Origin: Scyliorhinus canicula
Taxonomy: Eukaryota
Length of the DNA: 64,000 bases
Direction of reading: 5' to 3'
NCBI RefSeq assembly: GCF_902713615.1
Contig: NC_052154.1
Span: 92,449,030 to 92,513,029 of the forward strand
The notes beneath the pieces are model-generated. The model saw only the letters and a list, made by a program, of their open reading frames with translations, was not told the DNA's origin and ran no database searches. Within the stretch, counting starts at the first letter, position 1; each line of letters begins with the position of its first letter. The translations under genes were made by a program, and so were the position numbers. This document shows positions 21,701-54,175 of this stretch, piece by piece.

Positions 21701-22602
21701 TCCTAACAGAAAGCAGGATGTAGGAAAGTGGGAGTCAGTGGAATAATAGGTATCTATCTATCCATTATAGGTAGCTGTGGGAATCAGTGGAACTTTAGCA
21801 GATTATTATTTACAGCCTAACCCCAGTACTCATTGAGTGCTATATGAAACCTGAAGAGAAACAAAATGGATCAACATCAGAGTTGATTGGACAGGGGGAT
21901 ATCCATCGCACCGTCAGGGAATCTCACACAAAGCCGATAATCCATCCCCGATTAACCTCTACACCGGAATATCTCCGATTGCCATTTCGCAGGATTGTTC
22001 ATGCGAACTCATCCTGCAAAATTAACTCCAATGGCCGGGGAGAGGGAAGGTGGGAGGCGTGGGATGGGTTTGCAAAGTGCGTTGGGGGGGGGGGGGGCAT
22101 GGATGTCATATTTGGATTTAACTCAATTATTTTCTCAAGACGTGGACCTCCTCTTATTAACAATGAAAAATGAAAATGAAAATCGCTTATTGTCACGAGT
22201 AGGCTTCAATGAAGTTACTGTGAAAAGCCCCGAGTCGCCACATTTGGCGCCTGTCGGAGAGGCTGCTGGCCTGCTTGGTCTGCTTTAAAAGCCAGCGATT
22301 TAGCCCAGTGAGCTAAACTAGCCCCTGCGATCCCGCATTCTGTTCAAAGGTTCCCGCCTCATTCCAGCAACGTGCTGTCACACTGTCGCTTTCCTAATGC
22401 TGTCAATGAGGTCAATCCCACATTCCGGCCAATAAGAAACTACTTAAACTTCGATTGACGGGTGCTGTCCAGGTCTCATTCATAACTCGTCCCTTGAAAT
22501 AGGTTGCGACATTTGAGGGAACAGCTCACCACGTCATCTATCAAATCGGACTGTCAATAAAATATTTGCAAATTATCAGAGGCACATCAGATCATTTGCG
22601 CT

Positions 22603-22648
22603 ATGTTTGGATGTCAATACATATGGGCCCTGGGAATTATTTACGAAG
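22603..22648 (+). CDS. Gene 2 exon 1: signal-peptide (leader) exon
   Basis: ATG at 22603, translating MFGCQYIWALGIIYE, then a phase-1 donor G/GTactt at 22649. It joins the V exon to give MFGCQYIWALGIIYEVVSA. A homologous leader lies at 53682. Confidence 0.85.
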
Positions 22649-22726
22649 GTACTTTCCGCAACAAACAACAAGGTCTTTCCCCTTCAGTTTCTTCCGCTCA
22701 GTCTACCAATCTTTCATCCACCCATC

Positions 22727-22800
22727 GACCTACCTACCTACCTCCCTCCCTCCCTACCTACCTCCCTACCTACCTGTCCAGCTCTCTCTCTCTCACTCTG
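22727..22800. repeat. (CCTA/CCCT)n plus (CT)n microsatellite in the leader intron
   Basis: ctacctacctacctccctccctccctacctacc…ctctctctctc. Confidence 0.85.
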
Positions 22801-22861
22801 TCTGCCGTTACAGTATAATTTAAAGTATAAATATGGTAACTACATGTTTAATATGTTACAG

Positions 22862-23173
22862 TTGTTTCTGCCTCAGTGTCGCAAACTCCTGAAAGCACCA
22901 TTCTGATGGCAGGTTCAGACATGACGTTCCATTGTACAGCGAGCCCAGTCCTGATTCACTCACACGTGGATGTTTATTGGTGGAAACTTGGCAACCAAGC
23001 CTCATTACAACCAGATTCTGACGGCAGAAAACGGTTCTTTCCTTTTACAAATGGAGCGACTTCATTCCAGATCCTGAATGTCCGTGTCCCCGACTCCGGA
23101 TTCTATTACTGCGGAGTGCGAGACTCAGGTAACGAGATCCTGAATGGAACCGGATCGAAACTTGTTGTGCACG
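22862..23173 (+). CDS. Gene 2 exon 2: V-set Ig domain with germline-joined J-like strand
   Basis: Acceptor ttacAG at 22860-61 and donor G/GTaagc at 23174; 312 nt, phase 1-1. Motifs MTFHC, VYWW, FQILNVRVPDSGFYYC and a J-like G-x-G motif NGTGSKLVV all sit in one exon. No RSS seen. Confidence 0.93.
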
Positions 23174-23439
23174 GTAAGCGAGTTGCCGCCTCTGTTATTG
23201 TGGGTGGTTGTATGGAGTATCATGGGTTGCTTTGATTATTGAGTGAATTGATTGCTGATGTTGATTGGGGGAAGAGGATGAGAGAGCATTATTTAAAGTC
23301 AGATCTAAAACCATGTCACAATTCTTTGTTTTCTATTCATCAACATTCTGTGTTAATTAGTGCAGGGTAACACAAAGAGGACTTGCGCAATACATGGGAG
23401 CAAAAGGGACCTTAATTGTCAACGTTCTGTGATTTGTAA

Positions 23440-23822
23440 TTCAAAGAACAAAGAAAGGTATAGCACCGGAAGAAGCCCTTGGGCCCTCCAAGCCTGCTCC
23501 GACCATGTTGCCCGTCTGACATAAACTTTCCTGCATATCCGCGGTCGGTATCCCACTATTCCCATCATATTCATGTCTTTGTCAAGACGCCCCTTAAATG
23601 TCACTGTGGTACGTGCTTCCACCACCTCCCCGGCAGTGAGTTCCAGGCATCCACTACTCTCTGTGTAACAAAACTTCCCTCGCACATCTCCTCTTAACTT
23701 TGTCCCTCACATCATAAACCTATGTCCCCTAGTAATTGACTCTTCCACCAGGGGAAAAAGTTTCTGACTATCCAATCTGTCCATACCCCTCATAACATTG
23801 TAGGCTTCTTTCAGGTCCCTCT
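23440..23822 (-). mobile_element. CR1 3'-end fragment
   Basis: Reverse-complement RT C-terminus (MRGKFCYTESSGCLE…) and an (AAAGAAC)n tail. Similar fragments lie at 48465-49075 and 61630-61830. Confidence 0.8.
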
Positions 23823-24091
23823 AAACCTCTCCAAAGCCTCCAATTCCTTCTGGCAGTGTGAAGATGTCAAAATGTTCAAATATTCAATTTCAAAAGCCTC
23901 AGTTCTGATTTTCCTTCGTGCCGCCTTCAAAGATTACGATAATCGGGTTAGAGACGCGGTTCTGACTGTGGAATCCGCCCGTTCCATATCGATTGTAATT
24001 GATTAGATGGCTGGTTTATAATAAAATACTGATACTGGCTACTAGGAGGCGCTGCTCCCTCTCCTGGAGAGAGCTTCATACCTAATTGAAA

Positions 24092-24260
24092 TGATGTGGA
24101 GATGCAGGCGTTGGACTGGGGTGAACACAGTAAGTCTTACAACACCAGGTTAAAGTCCAACATGTTTGTTTCAAACACTAGCTTTCGGAGCACTGCTCCT
24201 TCCTCAGGTGAATCCTCTTCATTCATCTGGGGAAGGAGCAGCGCTCCGTAAGTTGGTACC
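24092..24260 (+). repeat. Interspersed repeat, class not assigned
   Basis: gatgtggagatgcaggcgttggactggggtgaacacagtaagtcttacaacaccagg…; a partial reverse-complement copy lies at about 55570-55620. Confidence 0.55.
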
Positions 24261-24772
24261 TAATTGAAAGAAGACAAGAGGAGCATATGGAATCTCTGTG
24301 TATTTGAATAAATTCCAGGCAGCTGGAAATTCAATCCCGAGGAGCATTTTGATCCTTGTTGGAAATTAGATTTGATAATCACCCGGGGTTACTCAACATT
24401 ACGTCGAAACCAACCTATGGAATTTATAGCTCTGTTCAGTGAACTGAGGTCAGACCAAATCTAAAGTTAATTTTGCTGCCAGCTATAATGGAAACAAAGA
24501 AACTGTGACTGTTTATTCAGCCATCACCACTTCTCAGCCCCACGGTTGATCTCTTCAAACGCCATTTGCTGCCAAATCCTTTGAATCAAATTTGCTGCAA
24601 GTTGTCCTTCTTCCTCTTTTAAGATTTTAGACACAATCTTGCGCATTCGAATTTCCGTGGGGCCACTTCTCTGGGCGGTAATAATGTAAATCTTTGCTGC
24701 AGACAAGAAACCTTAACTTAATGCGTTTGAATTAATATTATCTAGATTAATTGTCTTTATTAACCTTTACCT

Positions 24773-27494
24773 GAGGGGGTTATTGAGAGGAGTTATAGGG
24801 AGGTAGTCACACATCAGGTAAAAGAAGAAGGTAGATGGGTTACCATCAGGGGAACGAGAGGGAACCGGCAGGCAGTGCAGGGATCCCCTGTGGTCGTTCC
24901 CCTCAATAACAAGTATACCGTTTTGGATACTGTTGGGGGGGGGGGAACGACTTACCTGGGGTAAACAATGGGGCACAGGTCTCTGGCACAGAGTCTGTCC
25001 CTGTTGCTCAGAAGGGAAGGGAGAAGAGGAACAGAGCACTTGTCATTGGGTACTCCATAGTTAGAGGAATAGACTGGAGGTTCTGTGGGAACGAAAGAGA
25101 CTCACGGTTGGTGTGTTGCCTCCCAGGTGCCAGGGTTCGTGATGTCTCTGATCATGTTTTTGGGATCCTTAAGGGGGAGGGGGAACAGCCCCAAGTCGTG
25201 GTCTAAATAGGTACCAATGACATAGGTAGGAAGAGAGATGGGGATTTGAGACAGAAATTCAGGGAGCTAGGGTGGAAGCTGAGAGCTAGAACAAACAGAG
25301 TTGTTATCTTTGGGTTGTTAGCCGTGCCACGTGCTAGCGAAGTGAGAAGTAAGGAGAGTGAGGAGTTGACCACGTGGCTACAGGGATGGTGCAGGAGGGA
25401 GGGTTTTGGTTTCCTGGATAATTGGGGCTCATTCTGGGGTAGGTGGGACCTCTACAAACAGGATGGTCTTCACCTGAACCAGAGGGGTACCAATATCCTG
25501 GCGGGGAGATTTGCTAGTGCTCTTCGGGGGGGGGGGGGGGGGGGGGGTTTTAAACTAATTCTGCAGGGGGATGGGAACCTAAATTGTAGTCCCAGTGTCC
25601 AGGATGTTGAGAGTAGTGAGCTCAGGGATAGGGTTAAAAGTTCGAAAGAGGGCACCGGCAAGCAAGATGCTGGTTTGAAGTGTGTCTACTTCAACGCCAG
25701 GAGCATCCGGAATAAGGTGGGTGAGCTTGCAGCATGGGTTGGTACCTGGGATCTCGATGTTGTGGCGATTTGGAGACATGGGTAGGGCAGGGACAGGAAT
25801 GGTTGTTGCAGGTTCCAGGATTTAGATGTTTCTGTAAGAACAGAGAAGATGGAAAAAGTGGTGGGGGGGGGGGGGGGTGTGGCATTGTTAATCAAGGAAA
25901 GTATTACAGCGGCAGAAAGGACGTTTGAGGACTTGTCTACTGAGGTAGTATGGGCCGAGGTTAGGAACAGGAGAGGAGAGAGGTCAGTGTGTTGGGAGTT
26001 GTCTATAGACCTCCGAATAGTTACAGAGATGTAGAGGATAGGATAGCAAAGATGATTCTCGACAGGAGCGAGAGTAACAGAGTAGTTGTTATGGGGGACT
26101 AGAACTTTCCAAATATTGACTGGAAATACTATAGTTCGAGTACTATAGATGGGTCAGTTTTTGTGCGGTGTGTGCAGGAGGGTTTTCTGACACAGTATGT
26201 AGACAGGCCAACAAGGGCGATGCCCCATTGGATTTGGTACTGGGTAATGAACCCGGCCAGGTGTTAGATTTAGATGTAGGTGAGCACTTTGGTGATAGTC
26301 ATCACAATTCGGTTATGTTTACTTTAGCGATGGGCAGGGATAGGTATATACCACAAGGCAAGCATTATAGCTGGGGGAAAGGCAACTATTCGGCAAGATT
26401 TAGGATGTATAGTATGGGGAAGGAAACTGCAGGGGATGGGTACAATCGAAATGTGGAGATTTTTCAAGGAACAGCTACTGCGTGTCCTTGATAAGTATGT
26501 ACCTGTCAGGCAGGGAGGAAGTTGTCGAGCAAGGGAACCGTGGTTTACTAAGGAAGTTGAAGCGCTTGTCAAGAGGAAGAAGAAGGCTTATGTTAGGACG
26601 AGACATGAAGGCTCAGTTAGGGCACTTGAGAATTACAAGTTAGCCAGGAAGGACCTAAAGGGAGAGTTAAGAAGAGCGAGGAAAGGACACGAAAAGTCAT
26701 TGGCGGATAGGATCAAGGAAAACCCTAAGGCTTTCTATAGGTATATCAGGAACAAAAGAATGACTGGAGTAAGATTAGGGCCCATCAAGGATAGTAGTGG
26801 AAAGTTGTGTGTGGAATCAGAGGAGATAGGGGAAGCGTTAAATGGATATTTTTCTTCAGTGTTTACACTGAAGAAAGACAATGTTGTCGAGGAGAATATT
26901 TAGGTACAGTCGACCAGGCTAGATGGGATTGAGGTTCACAAGGAGGAGGTGTTAGCAATTTTGGAAAATGTAAAAATAGATAAATCCCCTGGGCCAGATG
27001 GGATTTATCCTAGGATTCTTTGGGAAGCCAGGAGGAGATTGCAGAGCCTTTGTCCTTGATCTTTATGTCGTCTTTGTCGACAGGAATAGTGCCGGAAGAC
27101 TGGAGGATAGCAAATGTTGCCCCCTTGTTCAAGAAGGGGAGTAGAGACAACCCTGGTAATTAAAGACCTGTGAGCCTTACTTCGGTTGTGGGTAAAATGT
27201 TGGAAAAGGTTACAAGAGATAGGGTTTATAATCACCTTGAAAAGAACAAGTTGATTAGCGATACTGAACACGGTTTTGTGAAGGGTAGGTCATGCCTCAT
27301 AAACCTTATTGAGTTTTTTGAGAAGTTGACGAAACAGGTGGATGAGGGTAAAGCGGTTGATGTGGTGTATATATGGATTTCAGTAAGGCGTTTGATAAGG
27401 TTCCCCACGGTAGGCTATTGCAGAAAATAAGGAAGTATGGAATTGAAGGTGATTTAGCGGTTTGGATCAGTAATTGGCTAGCTGAAAGAAGATG
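24773..27494 (+). mobile_element. Degenerate CR1 (ORF1 esterase + ORF2 APE/part of RT), truncated at both ends, in the V-C1 intron
   Basis: Colinear with about 41020-43710 of the intact element (DGLHLN, CVYFNARS, LDLVLG, SLTSVVGK). Carries stops, frameshifts and expanded G runs; no 3' tail. Confidence 0.92.
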
Positions 27495-27805
27495 TATGAG
27501 AGCTAAACAAGCCTAAATGACTTGGCCCAATTACTTTATGTTGTCAATGTACTTAATTATGTTCTTAATTTTTCATATATTTGGCTAATATTTATAGTGA
27601 GAATTTTATTTTGAATAGTTATGCAGTCCAAGGGCGTATTAAAATCAGTGTGGCATTCAAAAACCAGATCAACACATTTTGTCAGTCATGTAGTTTTGTG
27701 CTTGCGACGAAGCATCACTTGACTATATGTAAGTAGACTGGGCTTCCAACGAGAGTGAGGTAGTGAAGTCCAGTCAATTAGTGTTTTCATTTCCTTGCTC
27801 CACAG

Positions 27806-27880
27806 CTTCCCGACCACCAGTGAAACTGATCCTCAAAGTGTCCCAACCTCATCTACTCTAACAATTGTGTGTCAGAAGGG
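27806..27880 (+). pseudogene. Decayed duplicate C1 exon (5' part only)
   Basis: Acceptor region gtgttttcatttccttgctccacAG/cttcc resembles gtgttttcattttcctgttccacAG/cttct at 28815. Translates ASRPPVKLILKVS-(frameshift)-STLTIVC versus ASPEPIRLIPKVS…SALSLVC. An old antisense CR1 fragment follows (about 27885-28110). Confidence 0.7.
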
Positions 27881-28814
27881 TAACAATCCTCGCTTCTGTA
27901 GTCTCTCATTCTTAGTATGATTCTGGTAATCCCTCTGAACCCTCTTCAAACCCTATCTTTTTTCCAAAGCAAGAAGTGCAGAATTGGACAAAATGTTCTA
28001 ACTGATACCTAACCAGCGATTCACAAAGGCTCACCCTAATGTTGTTCTTTTTCTACACAATGCCTACATTCAGAAAGTCAATATGTTTTGATACCTCAGA
28101 ATGCATGGTAGCCTAAACATATATATTATTTGCATGTTAAATCTGTTGGAATCATGTCGCTTTGAATTAAGCGAATAAGTAAGAAACTGTTGTAACTGCA
28201 ATATTAATACACTAACTACTGGAAGGTGTAATTTATCGGGATGGAAGAAGCTATGGCTGATTATTCAGCTGCTTCAACCATTCTGCTCCTCGGAAAAATA
28301 TCTCAACTCTCACTTCCTGACTATTCTTTTGTCTCTCTTTAGAGTTATTTTTTTCTATCCGGGTAATCAAACTATCGCTCGTGTGGATGCCCCCCCCCCC
28401 CACCCCACCATGCTACCACACACACTCCAACTGATCTATGTTATAGATCATAAAGTGAATAATATAAATTAACATCACCTGAATGCATTTTGTGTTTTTA
28501 TTTAAAGGTACTGAACTGACTATGAAGACTCTGGATTCAGTGTAAATATAACTCCCGCAGAAAGTGGTGCGGCCTGATTGTCAAGCCTCACTGAAATAGT
28601 TTCTCCTATCACTGCATATGTGCTTTGTGAATCACCCTCATATTATTTTATTGTATCATTGATTTGGCACATCGCAAATTCTATCAGACATTTAGGTCCC
28701 TGCCTGTCGTACGATTCTGGTGGTTACATCCAACCAACCAGGAAGACTTGATCTCAGCTGAGACTAAGGTAGTGAAGTGCAGACAATCAGTGTTTTCATT
28801 TTCCTGTTCCACAG

Positions 28815-29123
28815 CTTCTCCAGAACCCATAAGGCTGATCCCCAAAGTGTCCCCAATCAACACATCTGCTCTGTCACTTGTGTGTGAAGCGGCCGAGTTC
28901 TATCCAGAGTCTCTCACCTTCACCTGGTATAAAAACGACAGCAACATTGTGACTGGGATCAGCACCATTCAGAAGGTGAATTCAGAGGGAACGTACGAAG
29001 CTTCCAGCATCTTGAAAACGACAGGGCCAGCCGAGAGCGGAATTGTGTATACCTGTGTGGTGTTTCACCTCACACTGCAGGACCCAGCCGTGGCTGTTTA
29101 CTATGACTCCATTTCCAACTCAG
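28815..29123 (+). CDS. Gene 2 exon 3: C1-set Ig domain
   Basis: Acceptor ttccacAG and donor G/GTtaga at 29124; 309 nt, phase 1-1. C1 motifs LVC…EFYP…TFTW, GTYEASSIL and YTCVVFH. Confidence 0.93.
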
Positions 29124-29869
29124 GTTAGATGCTGACGTTTGTACAGATATTGTGAATCACTGTTTACTATGTATTCACTTTAATTTATTTCAATCCTCTG
29201 AAATTTATTTGCAGGTTGATTCTACTTGGGTGTTTCAAAATTGGATAAAAGAAGTAAAAGCCTCGTAGCAGCCTCCTCGAACAGGCGCCGGAATGTGGCG
29301 ACTAGGGGCTTTTCACAGTAACTTCATTTGAAGCCTACTTGTGACAATAAGCGATTTTTGGGAAAAATTCCTCATCGAGTAACAGGGCGATCTCAGAAAA
29401 TATAATCCATTAGTTTGCACGTCATTTAACACATAAAAGGGAACCAATGGAATGTCTTTTGCCTCATGTAGTTCAAATGTCATCGTTACGGCAGGCTGCC
29501 GACATAGATCCTGCTTAGATACTTTCCGAGACCCTAAACTCATGCGGCTGCAGTTTATGCCTGGCTGCAAAGCTCCTGACTGCTGTGTCAATAAAAATGC
29601 AAGTGATATATTTTTATTCCTGCAATGTAACAATAATTGTAATCAAATGAATGTGAAAACAGAATCGATAACAATCCGAAATTACGCAAGTTAAAAGCTT
29701 CATTCTTCGTCTCTGTTATTGAAACACTGAAGATGTAAACCATGCAACAAATGTTGTTGAACAGATTGGTTTCAAAACACTGTATTTTAAGGAAAAATGA
29801 TCATTCGTATTGTTAGCAACAGTAGTATTATCTTCGCTATTTTCATTCTCAGTATTATCATGTTTACAG

Positions 29870-29983
29870 ACCATGAGCCCACGCCCATTTATCTGCAAAT
29901 TTCTGGATACACAGGAGCTGCATTGATATTTCTAACACTCGGTGCTTTCATTTTGATGAGTTATAAACTCAGTAAGTGTAACG
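29870..29983 (+). CDS. Gene 2 exon 4: stalk + transmembrane exon
   Basis: Acceptor tttacAG and donor G/GTaagg at 29984; phase 1-1. Translates DHEPTPIYLQISGYTGAALIFLTLGAFILMSYKLSKCN: an uncharged hydrophobic stretch followed by KLSK. Confidence 0.85.
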
Positions 29984-31585
29984 GTAAGGAACCAGCTATG
30001 TGGCTTCCCTTTGATACATTTGTAAAAACTGAAGCGGGAACTCAGCAGAGCACATAACTCGCCCATACTGTGTTAGCCTCAGCAGAATTGTAACAGCCGA
30101 GTCTTTTTTGAAAGTTTTCCCTGCCTGGTTGATACTCTGAAAGGAAAAAGCTAAAAATAGAAATGTCTTCGTTAATAACTCCAATCTCATTGGGAAGGCG
30201 TCAGGTCAAGCCACGTTGAAAAACCTGCTCCGCTGGTATTATGACAGCAATGTCAAATTCCACCCTTACCCACGAGACAATCCACAACATTGTAAAACAA
30301 TTAACAACATTCTAAATAAAAAAAGTAAATTGATAGAATTAATTCTTAGAAGAAGAATAGAATCCCAAACATGCATTCAGTCCATCGTGCCTGCAACAAC
30401 CCTCCAAAAGAGTACCCTACCAAGGCCACAAGTCCGCACCTACCCTTTGGACACTAAGGGACAGTTCAGCATTTGGAATGTGAGACCAAACCCTGAGGAA
30501 ACCCACGCAAACACGGAGAGAGCGTGCAAACTCCACACAGTCACCCAAGGTCGGAATTGAACCCGGGTCTCAGGCCCTCTACAGCAGCAGTGTTAACCAT
30601 TGTGCCACCATGGCGCTCTATAACCCATTGTCAATTGATCCTTTAAAAACAATTTAGAAGCACAACCCGTAATGCATTTTAGCCAAAACAAGAACCAGTT
30701 CTACATTAAGCCAAATCGTATCTGTGTACCAGGTTTTATTGAAATATGTTTATTAGTTTCTGAGCTGTGTTATTTTAAAACCATACCGACAGACTAACCA
30801 TCAAATAGAAAAATTCAGTCCGCCGCCAACAGTGACAGGAAGTAGTGAAGAAAGAAATATTACTGTGAGGAAAGAAGGAAATATTGAATATGATCCAGAA
30901 ATAGAAATGAGTTGATATCTAAGCTGTTCCAATTGCAACCACAATCTGAAATAAATAAATTATCAAACAGTTAATCAAACGAGCATAAAGTAATGATTAA
31001 GGAGTACAGATTTTTTTTTAAAGTTTTAGTTTGTGTTTTGAAGTTTGGAATGATTTGCATCCTTGCGGGTCTAATGCATTTCAGGATATATGAGGTTTCC
31101 CCTACCCTGTTATCCTCAAGGCGCCACTGATTGAGAATCAGTCAGATCTGCCTCCTCACCTTCACGTAATATCCAGATGAATTTTTCATTTCACTTCGGG
31201 AGGAAATTATAGAAATGAAAAGGGGCTACGAGACTTCGAAGAAGTGGTGTAATTCTCTACTACAGTTCAAAAAGATGGTAAAAACAAAATAACACAAACC
31301 TCCAATAAATGCATTTAAATTATATGCAGGACCTGGTAATTTTGTACGTGCATTGTTGCTGAATGTTTATATGGACGAGTGGTCATCGCGCAACGTAAAC
31401 AAACCCCTGTCTGTCCCTGTATCGGCTTTAAACATTCCAAGTCAAGTACAGGGTCCAGTGGATGTTAACGTACTTCCATCCATAATGTCCCATCAAACAC
31501 TTCAGCAAGGAGTTTAGGTAGAAATTGAATCTCCCATTACATCGACGGGTCATGTACTCCCAGGACAGGGTTAGATTCTGGATGG

Positions 31586-32242: not shown

Positions 32243-33525
32243 ATATCGGAGGGTTTTCTATATACTGATATGCAAAGGTAAGTCACAGAGAAAGGCTCCA
32301 GAGACAGGACAAACAAGCCAACACTCTTAGTGGAGTCTGTCAATAGACCATGTGATTTCTCCACAGCCTCCCTCTAACTAAGCAGTACAATCCCGGAAAT
32401 AGCATTTCCATCAGTACTGATTATTAATTCATTTTACATTTGATCATGTAAATCCAAACACAACTATTTAGATTAAGATTCACCAGGAAATAAGCATTGG
32501 TTCCAAAGAACAGCAACTTGCATTAATGTACAATATCATAATATGCTCATAGTCAAAGTCCCAAGTCACCTCAAAGGGGAGATCTCAAACACAACTGGCC
32601 ATGGAGCTATATGGCTTGACGAAGGAGCGATGGCAAAAGCCTGGCCAAAGATATAAGTGTTGACGAACATCTTGAAGGCGAACAACTGGTTGATTTGAGG
32701 AAGCGATCCCAGAGTTTAGAGCTGAGGCAACTGGATGCTCCGCTGCCGATGATAAAGCGAGGTTGAAGGGGGCAAAATTAGAGGAGTAGAAGTACCAGAG
32801 GTGTTTAGAGATGGAGTCGCTTAAAATAGATAGGGAGGGACAAAGCCATGGAGACATTTCGAAAAGGAGGATAATCTAGGCATTGATTCACCGTGAATGA
32901 TCATACGGCAGTGCGGATAGAGGTGGAACTAAAGTTGTCATGAGTTGAGAGATGGAAATAATGGATTGCCACAAATGTACTGAGGGTAGAATGTGGGAGC
33001 ACAAAGTCAACGTAGCGTCTAGTTCTTCTGGTCTCAATATTGATTAAACATATCTGCATCATTTAGAACTGTGCCCGAAACACTCACTAGGCGAAATGTT
33101 CTGCAGCTAGGCATTTCTCCCGCATTAGGGCTATCTCCCGCTCGTGTCAGAGCAGAGGCATTGTGAAAACATTCTGAAGCCGCCGCGTATTCACTACCCA
33201 GTTAAGGACAAGAGTTGGAACAGAAATGTACCTGACCCAATGAGAGGGCAGGCGGGAGAGCAAGCTAGCAGTATCACTGTGAGAAGCGAATTCTGAAGAG
33301 GCAGAAGGTGAGTGAGAGGGCACGTAAAAATGTGAATAATTTCAAAAGGCTACAGAATGCCACATAACAAAAAGGGCCAGGGCTGGAAGACCGGGAGGAT
33401 ATTTCCCCCTGTGAGAAGAATGCAGTTGGTCAATGTAATTTCGAAAAAAAGTACATTGTTTTTCATTTTGCTGCATGCTTCACCCTACTGGAGCTAATTT
33501 TAGTTTGTTTTTTTCGAATTCACAG

Positions 33526-33645
33526 CCTGAAAATAGACGGCAAGATGGCGTATGCTGTCAGCAAAGGAAAACAAACATATATTCCGGTGGAAAAGGGAAA
33601 CAACGAGCAATGTTGTTACGCAGACTAGATAAACGTATTAGATAG
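33526..33645 (+). other. Candidate terminal cytoplasmic exon of gene 2 (frame unresolved)
   Basis: Strong acceptor gctaat…tttgtttttttcgaattcacAG. Phase 0 reads PENRRQDGVCC…RIR* (stop 33643-45). Phase 2 reads LKIDGKMAYAV…TYIPV…CCYAD* (stop 33626-28). No canonical ITIM in either frame. Confidence 0.3.
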
Positions 33646-33666
33646 AATATTTAAGTGAATCGTGCT

Positions 33667-36600
33667 TGTGGTGAATATATTCACCTAGTGCATGAGCTAT
33701 CTGTATGATACTGTAACCTATTCTAGAGCTGTTGGGGAGGGTTTAAACTAATGTGGCAGGGGGATGGGAACCAATGCTGGAAGTTGGAAGGTAGTAAAAC
33801 AGGGACAGAAACAAAAGGAAGTAAGGGGAAAAGTGCAAGGCAGAGAAGACATAGTCAGAAATCCATAAGGTCGACAGTACAAGGTACAGTGACTGAGGGG
33901 AGCACAGTGAATAGGCCCAGTAATAACAAAAGGAATAAAACTGGAGATGTTAAGATTCAAAACAGAGGTAAAAAAAACAACATAAGTGTACTTTACCTGA
34001 ATGCTCGTAGTATTCGGAATAAAGTAAATGAGTTGGCGGCACAAATCATCGTAAATGACTATGATTTAGTGGCCATTACTGAAACATGGTTAAAGGATGG
34101 TCACGACTGGGAGTTAAATATCCGAGGGTATCAAACTATTCGGAAGGACAGAGTGGATGGTAAGGGAGGTGGTGTTGCTCTGTTATTTAAGGATGACATC
34201 CGGGCAATAGTAAGGGATGACATTGGTGCTATGGAGGATAAGGTTGAATCCATTTGGGTGGAAATCAGGAATAGTGAGGCGAAAAAGTCACTGATAGGAG
34301 TAGTCTATCGGCCACCAAATAGTAACGACATGGTGGGGCAGGCAATAAACAAAGAAATAACTGATGCATGTAGAAATGGTACAGCAGTAATCATGGGGGA
34401 TTTTAATCTACATGTCGATTGGTTTAACCAGGTCGGTCAAGGCAACCGTGAGGAGGAGTTTATAGAATGTATCCGCGATAGTTTCCTAGAACAGTATGTA
34501 ATGGAACCTATGAGGGAACAAGCGGTCCTAGATCTTGTCCTGTGTAATGAGACAGGATTGATTCATGATCTCATAGTTAGGGATCCTCTCGGAAGGAGCG
34601 ATCACAATATGGTGGAATTTAAAATACAGATGGAGGGTGAGAAAGTAAAATCAAATACTAGTGTTTTGTGTTTAAAAAAAGGAGATTACAAGGGGATGAG
34701 AGAAGAACTAGCTAAGGTAGACTGGGAGCTAAGACTTTATGGTGGAACAGTTGAGGAACAGTGGAGAACCTTCCAAGCAATTTTTCACAATGCTCAGCAA
34801 AGGTTTATACCAACAAAAAGGAAGGACGGAAGAAAGAGGGAAAATCGACCGTGGATACTAAGGAAATAAGGGAGAGTATCAAATTGAAGGAAAAAGCATA
34901 TAAAGTGGCAAAGATTGCTGGGAGATTAGAGGACTGGGAAATCTTTAGGGGGCAACAGAAAGCTACTAAAAAAGCTATAAAGAAGAGTAAGATAGAGTAT
35001 GAGAGTAAACTTGCTCAGAATATAAAACCAGACAGTAAAAGTTTTTACAAATATATAAGACAAAAAAGAGTGGCTAAGGTAAATATTGGTCCTTTAGAGG
35101 ATGAGAAGGGAGTTTTAATAATGGGAAATGAGGAAATGGCTGAGGCACTGAACAGGTTTTTTGGGTCGGTCTTCACAGTGGAAGACACAAATAACATGCC
35201 AGCGACTGATAGAAATGAGGCTATGACAGGTGAGGACCTTGAGAGGATTGTTATCACTAAGGAGGGAGTGATGGGCAAGTTAATGGGGCTAAAGGTAGAC
35301 AAGTCTCCTGGCCCTGATGGAATGTATCCCAGAGTGCTAAAAGAGATGGCTAGGGAAATTGCAGATGCACTAGTGATAATTTACCGAAATTCACTAGACT
35401 CTGGGGTGGTCCCGGTGGATTGGAAATTAGCAAACGTGACGCCACTGTTTAAAAAAGGAGGTAGGCAGAAAGCAGGGAATTATAGGCCAGTGAGTTTAAC
35501 TTCGGTAATAGGGAAGATGCTGGAATCTATCATCAAGGAAGAAATTGCGAGGCATCTGGATAGAAATTGTCCCATTGGGTAGACGCAGCATGGGTTCGTA
35601 AAAGGCAGGTCATGCCTAACTAATTTAGTGGAATATTTTGAGGACATTACCAGTGCAGTAGATAACGGGGAGCCTATGGATGTGGTATATCTGGATTTCC
35701 AGAAAGCCTTTGACAAGGTGCCACACAAAAGGTTGCTGCATAAGATAAAGATGCATGGCATTAAGGGTAAAGTAGTAGCATGGATAGAGGATTGGTTAAT
35801 TAATAGAAAGCAAAGAGTTGGGATAAATGGATGTTTCTCTGGTTGGCAATCAGTGGCTAGTGGTGTCCCTCAGCGATCCGTGTTGGGCCCACAATTGTTC
35901 ACAATTTACATTGATGATTTGGAGTTGGGGACCAAGGGCAATGTGTCCAAGTTTGCAGATGACACTAAGATGAGTGGTAAAGCGAAAAGTGCAGAGGATA
36001 CTGGAAGTCTGCAGAGGAATTTGGATAGGTTAAGTGAATGGGCTAGGGTCTGGCAGATGGAATACAATGTTGACAAATGTGAGGTTATCCATTTTGGTAG
36101 GAATAACAGCAAACGGGATTATTATTTAAACAATAAAATATTAAAGCATGCCGCTGTTCAGAGAGACTTGGGTGTGCTAGTGCATGAGTCACAGAAGGTT
36201 GGTTTACAAGTGCAACAGGTGATTAAGAAGGCAAATGGAATTTTGTCCTTCATTGCTAGAGGGATGGAGTTTAAGACTAGGGAGGTTATGTTGCAATTGT
36301 ATAAGGTGTTAGTGAGGCCACACCTGGAGTATTGTGTTCAGTTTTGGTCTCCTTATCTGAGAAAGGACGTACTGGCACTGGAGGGTGTGCAGAGGAGATT
36401 CACTAGGTTAATCCCAGAGCTGAAGGGGTTGGATTATGAGGAGAGGTTGAGTAGACTGGGACTGTACTCGTTGGAACTTAGAAGGATGAGGGGGGATCTA
36501 ATAGAAACATTTAAAATTATGAAGGGAATAGATAGGATAGATGTGGGCAGGTTGTTTCCACTGGCGGGTGACAGCAGAACTAGGGGGCATAGCCTCAAAA

Positions 36601-37130
36601 TAAGGGGAAGTAGATTTAGGACTGAGTTTAGGAGGAACTTCTTCACCCAAAGGGTTGTGAATCTATGGAATTCCTTGCCCAGTGAAGCAGTTGGGGCTCT
36701 TTCATTACATGTTTTTAAGGTAAAGATAGATAGTTTTTTGAAGAATAAAGGGATTAAGGGTTATGGTGTTCGGGCTGGAAAGTGGAGCTGAGTCCACAAA
36801 AGATCAGCCATGATCTAATTGAATGGCGGAGCAGGCTCGAGGGGCCAGATGGCCTACTCCTGCTCCTTTTTCTTATATTCTTATATTCTTATGACCTGGA
36901 AGTGTATTCTTATAGTCTTATGACCTGGAAGTGGTTATAAGAGCTACTTCCAAGTCCTGTACTGTAACGGGGGCTCCGCCTCTGGCTCCCCCCTCACCAG
37001 GGCCATATATAGACTGGCCACTAGTGGGTGGCACTCATCTGTACACCCAACTCTGGCTAGGCAATTCATGATTAATAAAGCCTAATGTTCACTCGCTCTC
37101 TCAGTTTCTTGGTGAATTGACGGTACATCA
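33667..37130 (+). mobile_element. Solo LTR (about 300 bp) interrupted by a 3.2-kb CR1
   Basis: Starts TGTGGTGAAT at 33667 and resumes at about 36890 with a TATA-like catatatag, AATAAA at 37074-79 and the end …gacggtacatCA at 37130. Flanks gtgct/atgct form a 5-bp TSD with one mismatch. Confidence 0.7.
33725..36890 (+). mobile_element. CR1 with near-complete ORF2 (APE+RT), 5'-truncated at the ORF1/ORF2 junction
   Basis: ORF2 from ATG 33751 to the stop at 36791 has one frameshift (about 34860) and one TAG (35580-82). APE motifs LNARS, ITETW, YRPP, GDFN, SDH; RT motifs QHGF, DFQKAFD, FADD. (TATTCTT)n tail. Confidence 0.95.
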
Positions 37131-53681: not shown

Positions 53682-54175
53682 ATGTTTGTGTGCTAGTGCA
53701 GATGGGCTTTGGGGATTTTTTACGAAGGTATTTTTCATTCCAGTTGGCCGACCTCTAGTGTTCATTTTGTTTCTTCGAAGCAGTGATTTCGCGTGATTGT
53801 CTGTCTGTCCATCTGTCTGCGGTTGAAGTATAATTCAATTGTATGTGGTAACTACATGTTTAATATGTTACAGTTGTTTCTGCCTCAGTGTCGCAAACTC
53901 CTGAAAGCACCATTCTGATGGCAGGTTCAGACATGACGTTCCATTGTACAGCGAGCCCAGTCCTGATTCACTCACACGTGGATGTTTATTGGTGGAAACT
54001 TGGCAACCAAGCCTCATTACAACCAGATTCTGACGGCAGAAAACGGTTCTTTCCTTTTACAAATGGAGCGACTTCATTCCAGATCCTGAATGTCCGTGTC
54101 CCCGACTCCGGATTCTATTACTGCGGAGTGCGAGACTCAGGTAACAGGATTCTGAATGGAACCGAATTGTGCACG
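53682..54175 (+). pseudogene. Leader + V exon pseudogene, paralogous to gene 2
   Basis: Leader 53682-53727 has an in-frame TAG at codon 5. V exon 53874-54175 is 302 nt versus 312 nt in gene 2, with a 10-nt deletion that removes the J-like GTGSKL. No convincing C1 or TM exon downstream in the window. Confidence 0.88.

Follow-up and report, generated by a model that had tools for sequence, protein, structure and literature searches.

A germline-joined, non-rearranging receptor gene of variable–constant type is intact and transcribed in Scyliorhinus canicula, the small-spotted catshark. It lies on the plus strand of a 64,000-nucleotide (nt) stretch of contig C9 (C9:92449030-92513029), here called the window, and positions below are counted from its first letter unless a contig is named. 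The gene joins a leader, a variable (V) domain that already contains its joining (J)-like strand, a single C1-type constant domain and a transmembrane (TM) segment. Rather than being an antigen receptor of a novel type, it represents one old, conserved branch of a large family of shark, ray and chimaera receptors already present in the databases. The product, the catshark member of an old elasmobranch orthologue group, is a type I membrane glycoprotein that would probably serve its inhibitory relatives as a non-signalling partner for binding, adhesion or decoy.

The structure of the gene can be read directly from the genome and its transcripts. It consists of leader, VJ, C1 and TM exons, which join in phase 1, and a last exon. 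Acceptors (AG) and donors (GT) lie where the initial annotation had proposed them, and splicing of the interval 22400-30200 yields one open frame. Exon 1 (22603-22648, 46 nt) carries the start codon and encodes the signal peptide (MFGCQYIWALGIIYE); it closes in phase 1 at a GT donor, and its translation matches the N-terminus of the RefSeq protein P0154 exactly. Exon 2 (22862-23173, 312 nt, phase 1 to 1) encodes a V-set domain (Pfam, E 3.4e-8) with the J-like G strand NGTGSKLVVH inside the exon, and is represented in the RNA contig of run X1. Exon 3 (28815-29123, 309 nt) encodes a C1-set domain (Pfam, E 7e-12) with the motifs FYPE..TFTWYKN and YTCVVFH, and is covered by contigs of runs X1, X2 and X4. 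Exon 4 (29870-29983, 114 nt) supplies the stalk, the TM helix and the juxtamembrane residues KLSKCN; its junction with exon 3, 29123-29870, is GT..AG, and both the X1 and X2 contigs leave it at 29983. The last exon (33526-33721) completes the alanine codon G|CC and carries the stop codon TGA (33528-33530), the remainder being 3' untranslated region (UTR); it is defined by the X1 and X2 contigs, which align to 33525-33721 after the TM exon, and by the sequence.

Rearranging immunoglobulin (Ig) and T-cell receptor (TCR) genes are marked by separate V and J segments with recombination signal sequences (RSS). Here V and J are contiguous in one exon, which ends ...YYCGVRDSGNEILNGTGSKLVVH, and the J-like G-x-G strand directly abuts the splice donor. 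A heptamer/spacer/nonamer scan of 22000-30500 found no RSS at the V/J boundary. Its only two RSS-like matches, at 29314 (+) and 22222 (-), are identical in sequence and lie in repeat copies. The first, CACAGTA-23-ACAATAAGC, falls within 29191-29387, where a summed RNA depth above 200,000 marks a very abundant repeat resembling a short interspersed element; the motif recurs at about 22222 on the minus strand with a spacer of 22, probably in another copy of the repeat. The resemblance is probably coincidental, though it could mislead RSS scans of shark genomes. Exon coordinates, Pfam, the RSS scan and the RNA contigs thus bear out, in all its parts, the leader, V exon with J-like strand, C1 and TM exons in phase 1 without RSS that had been described from the letters alone. 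The gene reaches beyond the end assigned to it at 29983, with its stop codon in the last exon at 33526.

Expression is likewise observed directly. Spliced contigs were found in two independent studies, one per run: X1 (968 nt, depth 159) and X2 (1548 nt, depth 27). Both fuse the last 30 nt of the V exon to 28815, join 29123 to 29870, exit at 29983 and continue from 33525/33526 to 33721. The C1 exon is a single genomic copy, its next best match in the genome being 46% identical; because no second genomic copy of the exon exists, the contigs represent spliced RNA and not a processed retrocopy. The RefSeq model P0154 (isoform X2, 257 aa) equals the present model up to ...SYKL and then ends in T. 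This ending, ...SYKLT, is consistent with joining of an alternative donor in the TM exon, at 29972, to 33526, and RefSeq isoform X2 uses that donor.

The 3' end of the gene probably differs between haplotypes. Between the TM exon and the last exon, both contigs contain 14 letters (ACCAGAGAAGGGAC in X1, ...T in X2; 14-15 nt); a search tolerating mismatches recovered them neither from the intron nor from the window or its 20-kb flanks. The segment may be a micro-exon absent from the reference haplotype. A phase-preserving 15-nt micro-exon would end the protein ...SKCN-DQRRD-A; without the segment it ends ...SKCNA. The reference haplotype also carries a fragment of a CR1-type long interspersed nuclear element (LINE) in the 3' UTR (33722-36921, plus strand), a repeat copy with a (ATTCTTAT)n tail and ends that are not GT-AG. 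Transcripts from two other samples skip these 3.2 kb: after 33721 their sequence, GACCTGGAAGTGGT, matches from about 36922. The element is probably an insertion polymorphism. Coding variants occur as well. Compared with the reference, the X1 contig shows S132F and A145T and lacks S137-A138 in frame, which abolishes the glycosylation sequon at N135; in the X2 contig the changes are A145T and T237R, the latter within the membrane span. These apparent allelic differences (28851-28889 and 29898-29912) rest on one contig per run.

The encoded protein has no signalling tail of its own. In every version the cytoplasmic part is about 7-12 residues long, has no tyrosine, and contains no immunoreceptor tyrosine-based inhibitory, switch or activation motif (ITIM, ITSM or ITAM). 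The TM segment of the reference (IYLQISGYTGAALIFLTLGAFILMSY) contains no K, R, D or E. An AlphaFold2 model (mean predicted local distance difference test score 87) gives the V and C1 domains high confidence and places the TM helix at residues 229-256. There are three N-glycosylation sequons, at N110, N135 and N160. The first replaces the phenylalanine of the FGxG J motif: Asn-110 takes that position as part of an N-G-T sequon; this matches the consensus of the family, and six of eight sequences in alignment A1 have it. A glycan on N110 would occupy the site through which Ig and TCR V domains pair, which would argue against Ig-like V–V dimers. A homodimer prediction for two copies of the ectodomain (residues 17-222) returned a score of 0.00; this gives no verdict and is used neither for nor against pairing. 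Relics of ITIM tail exons were sought in the window and its flanks by tblastn with the tails of family members, and nothing significant appeared in 29984-53000; the same search readily recovered the TM and ITIM/ITSM exons of the upstream neighbour, with E-values down to 1.7e-21 at 966-1133.

The short tail is shared by a well-defined group of orthologues. The best match to the catshark protein is P0006 of Heterodontus (266 aa), with 75% identity in C1. A search started from P0006 returned the catshark protein in turn, as well as related proteins of Mustelus, Heptranchias, Pristis and Leucoraja. The maximum-likelihood tree built on 37 ectodomains of the family groups seven proteins, representing six species, as the orthologue clade (support 100/99). 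Its topology is species-like, Scyliorhinus grouping with Mustelus and Pristis with Leucoraja, and the Callorhinchus proteins fall elsewhere in the tree. All members are short-tailed and free of tyrosine motifs. Compared with the catshark protein, the V domains show 46-78% and the C1 domains 58-75% identity; 67 positions are invariant, including all Ig hallmark residues. The orthologues are themselves uncharacterised, so no well-characterised gene stands in one-to-one orthology to the catshark locus. The group is an old, conserved, short-tailed branch of the elasmobranchs and not a recent casualty.

This conservation bears on whether the gene is simply decaying, that is, a former inhibitory receptor that lost its tail and is drifting towards a pseudogene while still being transcribed without function. 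The lost tail exons would fit such a history, as would the LINE in the reference 3' UTR, the absence from the reference of 14-15 nt present in transcripts, the duplication relics nearby (a V pseudogene and a C1 fragment) and the in-frame two-codon allelic deletion that removes a sequon. The frame, however, is unbroken in the reference as well as in two further individuals, the short-tailed orthologues are intact in both sharks and batoids with their 67 invariant positions, and the X1 contig reaches a depth of 159. Decay is a highly improbable explanation.

The preferred interpretation, a conserved non-signalling partner of inhibitory receptors, draws on the family in which the gene sits. The initial annotation had suspected a multigene family from an ITIM/ITSM neighbour and a pseudogene. 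That suspicion was well founded: at least 30 related C1 exons lie on contig C9, in clusters at 80.45-81.33 Mb and 91.76-92.48 Mb, and the gene belongs to the second. It is 33-47% identical to its paralogues, and none of the related C1 exons exceeds 47%. The upstream neighbour has a V exon at -13306 (38% identity) and a C1 exon at -11656 (44%), 11-13 kb before the start of the window, and its ITIM/ITSM tail motifs, LTYAAL and TEYAQL, fall within the window at 996-1082. A C1-domain search of 1.84 billion representative proteins found many V-C1 proteins in sharks, rays and Callorhinchus. Their tails vary: many are long with repeated xTYAxL and TEYAxL motifs, in some the TM segment ends in D-H, and others are short. 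The exon plan of the catshark gene is shared by uncharacterised models of the family, among them XP_007902824 of Callorhinchus ('tyrosine-protein phosphatase non-receptor type substrate 1-like') and the catshark neighbour, as are the motifs YWWK.G, DSG.YYC, NGTGS.L.V, FYPE..T.TWYK and YTC.VSH. The family signature (WW after strand C, DSG.Y.C, the G-x-G J strand, FYP and YTC.V.H) reflects the columns that are invariant or nearly so in alignment A4 (37 sequences); P0154 has all of it, and 18 family C1 domains form one clade (97/99) that excludes the C1 domains of SIRP and Ig. Membership of the family is shown. Unlike other members, the gene lacks an ITIM/ITSM tail and the TM-edge cysteine that most of them have.

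A mechanism can be outlined from this setting. The features that suggest ligand binding by the V domain, in a surface glycoprotein whose own tail cannot signal, are a signal peptide, V and C1 domains, an uncharged TM segment, a tyrosine-free tail and three sequons, together with adjoining inhibitory paralogues and conservation among elasmobranchs. The V domain would bind a cell-surface or pathogen ligand, with the C1 domain as a spacer, and the protein would be unable to signal through tyrosine motifs of its own. The branch has lost the ITIM/ITSM tail exons that other family members carry, which would leave a non-signalling binding, adhesion or decoy partner of those inhibitory relatives, as SIRP-gamma is to SIRP-alpha. 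SIRP-gamma has a short tail without TM charge, as in the catshark gene, and its place beside SIRP-alpha is the closest functional analogy. The most likely role would be that of a non-signalling binding or decoy receptor comparable to SIRP-gamma. The gene is a good candidate for a ligand search, for example for CD47-like or NKp30-like partners, and families of this kind matter for the origin of paired inhibitory and non-signalling receptors.

The architecture is nearest to several known families at once. In the SIRPs of tetrapods and lungfish, as in this gene, the V domain includes a J-like G-x-G strand and has C1-set sequence after it, and the shark family contains both inhibitory and short-tailed forms. 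The predicted V-C1 geometry superposes on that of rat SIRP-alpha at 3.8 Å over 220 residues. SIRP ectodomains are V-C1-C1, however, whereas the gene has a single C1 exon between V and TM and its transcripts read V-C1-TM; identity to SIRPs is only 22-23%; and neither the ITIMs of SIRP-alpha nor the basic TM residue through which SIRP-beta engages DAP12 is found in the reference gene, although its paralogues have ITIM/ITSM pairs. A V-C-TM plan in phase-1 exons is common to the gene and to B7-H6 (NCR3LG1) and the B7/butyrophilin proteins. NKp30 (NCR3) differs in plan: it has a single VJ domain without C1 and a basic TM residue, and it is said to be MHC-linked (PMC10751288), where MHC denotes the major histocompatibility complex; the catshark gene has a C1 domain and an uncharged reference TM and lies off the MHC contig.

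Sequence searches do not separate these families. Against the PDB, the C1 domain alone matches UrIg2 (9dmx) first, as a sum over three domains whose best single score is 28.5 bits, followed by IgM, IgA and SIRP-alpha/gamma. For the V domain alone the top rows (polymeric Ig receptor, DCC and Robo) are multi-domain proteins whose scores sum weak stretches; among single stretches, TCR-alpha, light-chain V and IgNAR V match best. A profile of the orthologue group scores 98 bits against UrIg2, 82 against CD276 (two stretches), 70-77 against Ig lambda and 69 against SIRP-alpha. Fold comparisons are equally broad. In Foldseek the E-values of PD-L1, NCR3LG1, CD276, butyrophilins, the lambda chain, SIRP-alpha and TAPBPL span roughly three orders of magnitude, with identities of 15-23%. 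An unbiased structural search returned B7-H6 (4zso; Z 15.0, 24% over 192 residues), PD-L2 (Z 15.0), UrIg2 (Z 14.1, 21%), SIRP-gamma (Z 13.5, 22%) and light chains (25-26%). In the Atlas, SIRP-beta-like (rank 2), NCR3LG1 (rank 3), kappa-like and tapasin-related clusters all fall at 0.94-0.96. SIRP, B7-H6/B7, Ig light chain and UrIg2 thus tie at 20-26% identity, and the earlier reluctance to assign the gene to a named family was justified.

Of the phylogenies of V and C1 domains suggested for this locus, the C1 part was run. The tree comprised 18 family members, lungfish SIRP-like proteins resembling true SIRPs, IgM, IgNAR, teleost IgH, lambda C domains and others. The family is monophyletic and falls on the same side as the SIRP C1 domains, on a branch of moderate support (92/76), and the approximately unbiased (AU) test rejects neither a SIRP nor an Ig grouping. 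A Caretta protein, P0107, annotated as 'SIRP-alpha isoform X2' and sister to the family in its C1 domain, was not counted as evidence for SIRP; the model starts with C1 and has its TM segment mid-protein. Automatic names within the family are mostly SIRP-like, for example 'SIRP-beta-1-like'. A protein search with the family profile returned only cartilaginous-fish members, and a long ITIM tail used as a query returned its own cluster and one other Callorhinchus member but no SIRP tail outside cartilaginous fish; a word filter limits the weight of both searches. 'SIRP-like' is a reasonable working label on these sequence comparisons and not a demonstrated orthology; any true homology with the SIRPs of tetrapods is putative.

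On the main rival account the protein is a ligand of B7-H6/B7 type and not a receptor: a short-tailed V-C protein displayed to a VJ receptor, NKp30-like, on another cell. The unbiased fold search gives B7-H6 as its best match over two domains; PD-L1, NCR3LG1 and CD276 head the Swiss-Prot fold list of Foldseek, and the profile search gives CD276 its 82 bits; NCR3LG1-like names are borne by the orthologues of Heptranchias and Pristis, and the NCR3LG1 cluster is third in the Atlas. Short tails without signalling motifs are also common among B7 proteins. Yet the scores tie with those of Ig light chain and SIRP, and that of CD276 sums two stretches. The V domain has a full G-x-G J-like strand, and paralogues of the same family carry the paired ITIM/ITSM tails typical of inhibitory receptors. 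A B7-like ligand role seems unlikely to us, though it deserves to be taken seriously.

Several results weigh against the interpretation of the gene as an expressed, SIRP-gamma-like partner receptor. The exons have no coverage in the raw reads of RNA run X12. The tail in the RNA contigs (...KCN-DQRRD-A) differs from that in reference-based models (...KCNA or ...KLT), and the T237R substitution of allele X2 could permit pairing with an adaptor. Ig lambda scores at least at the level of SIRP-alpha in the profile search (70-77 against 69 bits), and the fold search ranks B7-H6 (Z 15.0) over SIRP-gamma (Z 13.5). The C1 tree contains no B7-H6, TCR or MHC sequences, and the AU test rejects neither family plus SIRP (difference in log-likelihood 0.02, p 0.50) nor family plus Ig (1.6, p 0.31).

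The third alternative concerns antigen-receptor ancestry. UrIg and UrIg2 of elasmobranchs share with the catshark gene a germline-joined VJ exon followed by C1-type constant domain(s). Linkage to the MHC is reported for UrIg and to the IgH/TCR-alpha-delta complex for UrIg2; the solved UrIg2 fragment (9dmx) is V-C1-C2-C3, and homodimers have been reported (PMC12227049). The gene might be a relic of the same sort, a surviving non-rearranging VJ-C1 lineage ancestral to the rearranging antigen receptors and not a relative of SIRP or B7. Its one-exon VJ followed by a C1 exon in phase 1 suits that reading, UrIg2 is the top PDB match both for C1 and for the family profile, the best single-domain matches of V are TCR-alpha, light-chain V and IgNAR V, and the family-plus-Ig clade is not rejected (p 0.31). 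Against this, the UrIg2 score sums three C domains, of which the best gives 28.5 bits, and fold-alignment identity is 21%; UrIg2 has three C domains where the gene has one C1 and a TM segment; the free tree separates the family from Ig C domains (92/76); and the asparagine that replaces the J-motif phenylalanine would disfavour Ig-like V–V pairing.

Genomic position points the same way. UrIg is MHC-linked, whereas the gene lies on a different chromosome from MHC class I, whose exons are on contig C13. On contig C9 a single, broken class I match occurs, 15 Mb from the window (C9:107511373-107511878), a class I-like alpha1/alpha2 region with internal stops; all others are on C13. A Pfam search of the genome for MHC class II beta gave no matches, and control genomes also gave none, so that this result is uninformative. 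The kinship with a pre-RAG receptor suggested by the initial annotation has no positive evidence: the gene is off the MHC chromosome, it has one C1 rather than the three C domains of UrIg, and V-C1-TM is also the plan of SIRP and B7. A VJ-C1 relic is very unlikely to be the right description of the gene. Equally little credence attaches to the broader view that the family, and its deeply conserved tail-less branch above all, is neither SIRP nor B7 but survives independently from the pre-RAG VJ-C1 stock, with the same closeness to Ig and TCR chains as UrIg, and that its chromosome is a paralogous counterpart, so far unrecognised, of the MHC/antigen-receptor region. These data neither demonstrate nor contradict a special link to the pre-RAG receptor, and they do not single the gene out as an antigen-receptor ancestor. 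Families of this type bear on the question of which V-C1 genes accompanied the earliest antigen receptors.

The initial annotation had suggested that the family may be poorly described. RefSeq already models the gene and its orthologues, though under names that are wrong and inconsistent. P0154 is called 'H-2 class II ... beta chain-like', which is incorrect, and among the orthologues NCBI names range from Ig lambda-like to NCR3LG1-like (Heptranchias and Pristis). The chondrichthyan V-C1 family as a whole is systematically mis-annotated under misleading names, and no description of it was found in the literature searched. The present gene corrects a misleading annotation and defines a conserved tail-less orthologue group within a large and apparently unstudied family of cartilaginous fish. 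Other RefSeq models, P0001 (Carcharodon 'titin-like', 1105 aa, 10 C1 matches), P0003, P0004 and P0005, look like read-through fusions of tandem V-C1 genes.

Two relics of duplication lie within the window. In intron 2, on the plus strand at 27760-27890, a frameshifted copy of the C1-exon acceptor and about the first 85 nt of the exon aligns to 28740-28900 with a 4-nt gap; similarity ends after the first cysteine, and transcript contigs skip the fragment. It is a relic of partial tandem duplication. Further downstream, 53682-54175 on the plus strand is a leader and V pseudogene of the same gene, identified by sequence comparison, in which codon 5 of the leader is TAG and the J strand has lost 10 bp; the following 20 kb contain no C1 or TM exon. 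A 300-bp tract of the pseudogene (53846-54145) is identical to 22834-23133 of the live gene, while the flanks are strongly diverged and overall column identity is 81%, which looks like recent gene conversion in either direction.

Other members of the family show further variation. P0159, P0032, P0029, P0092 and P0103, from other loci and species, have TM segments ending ...IIIVDH or ...IIFDH, with an acidic inner edge, and short tails; this second TM type is a possible set of activating or adaptor-coupled counterparts to the members with ITIMs. A skate member, P0015, is V-C1-C1 with two near-identical C1 copies. An equivalence with the d2-d3 arrangement of SIRPs was rejected, since near-identical copies look like a recent internal duplication. 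Finally, about 45 near-identical C1 exons, 33-35% identical to the C1 of the gene, form a 2-Mb array at C4:125.5-127.5 Mb, which is probably an Ig or TCR constant-region cluster.

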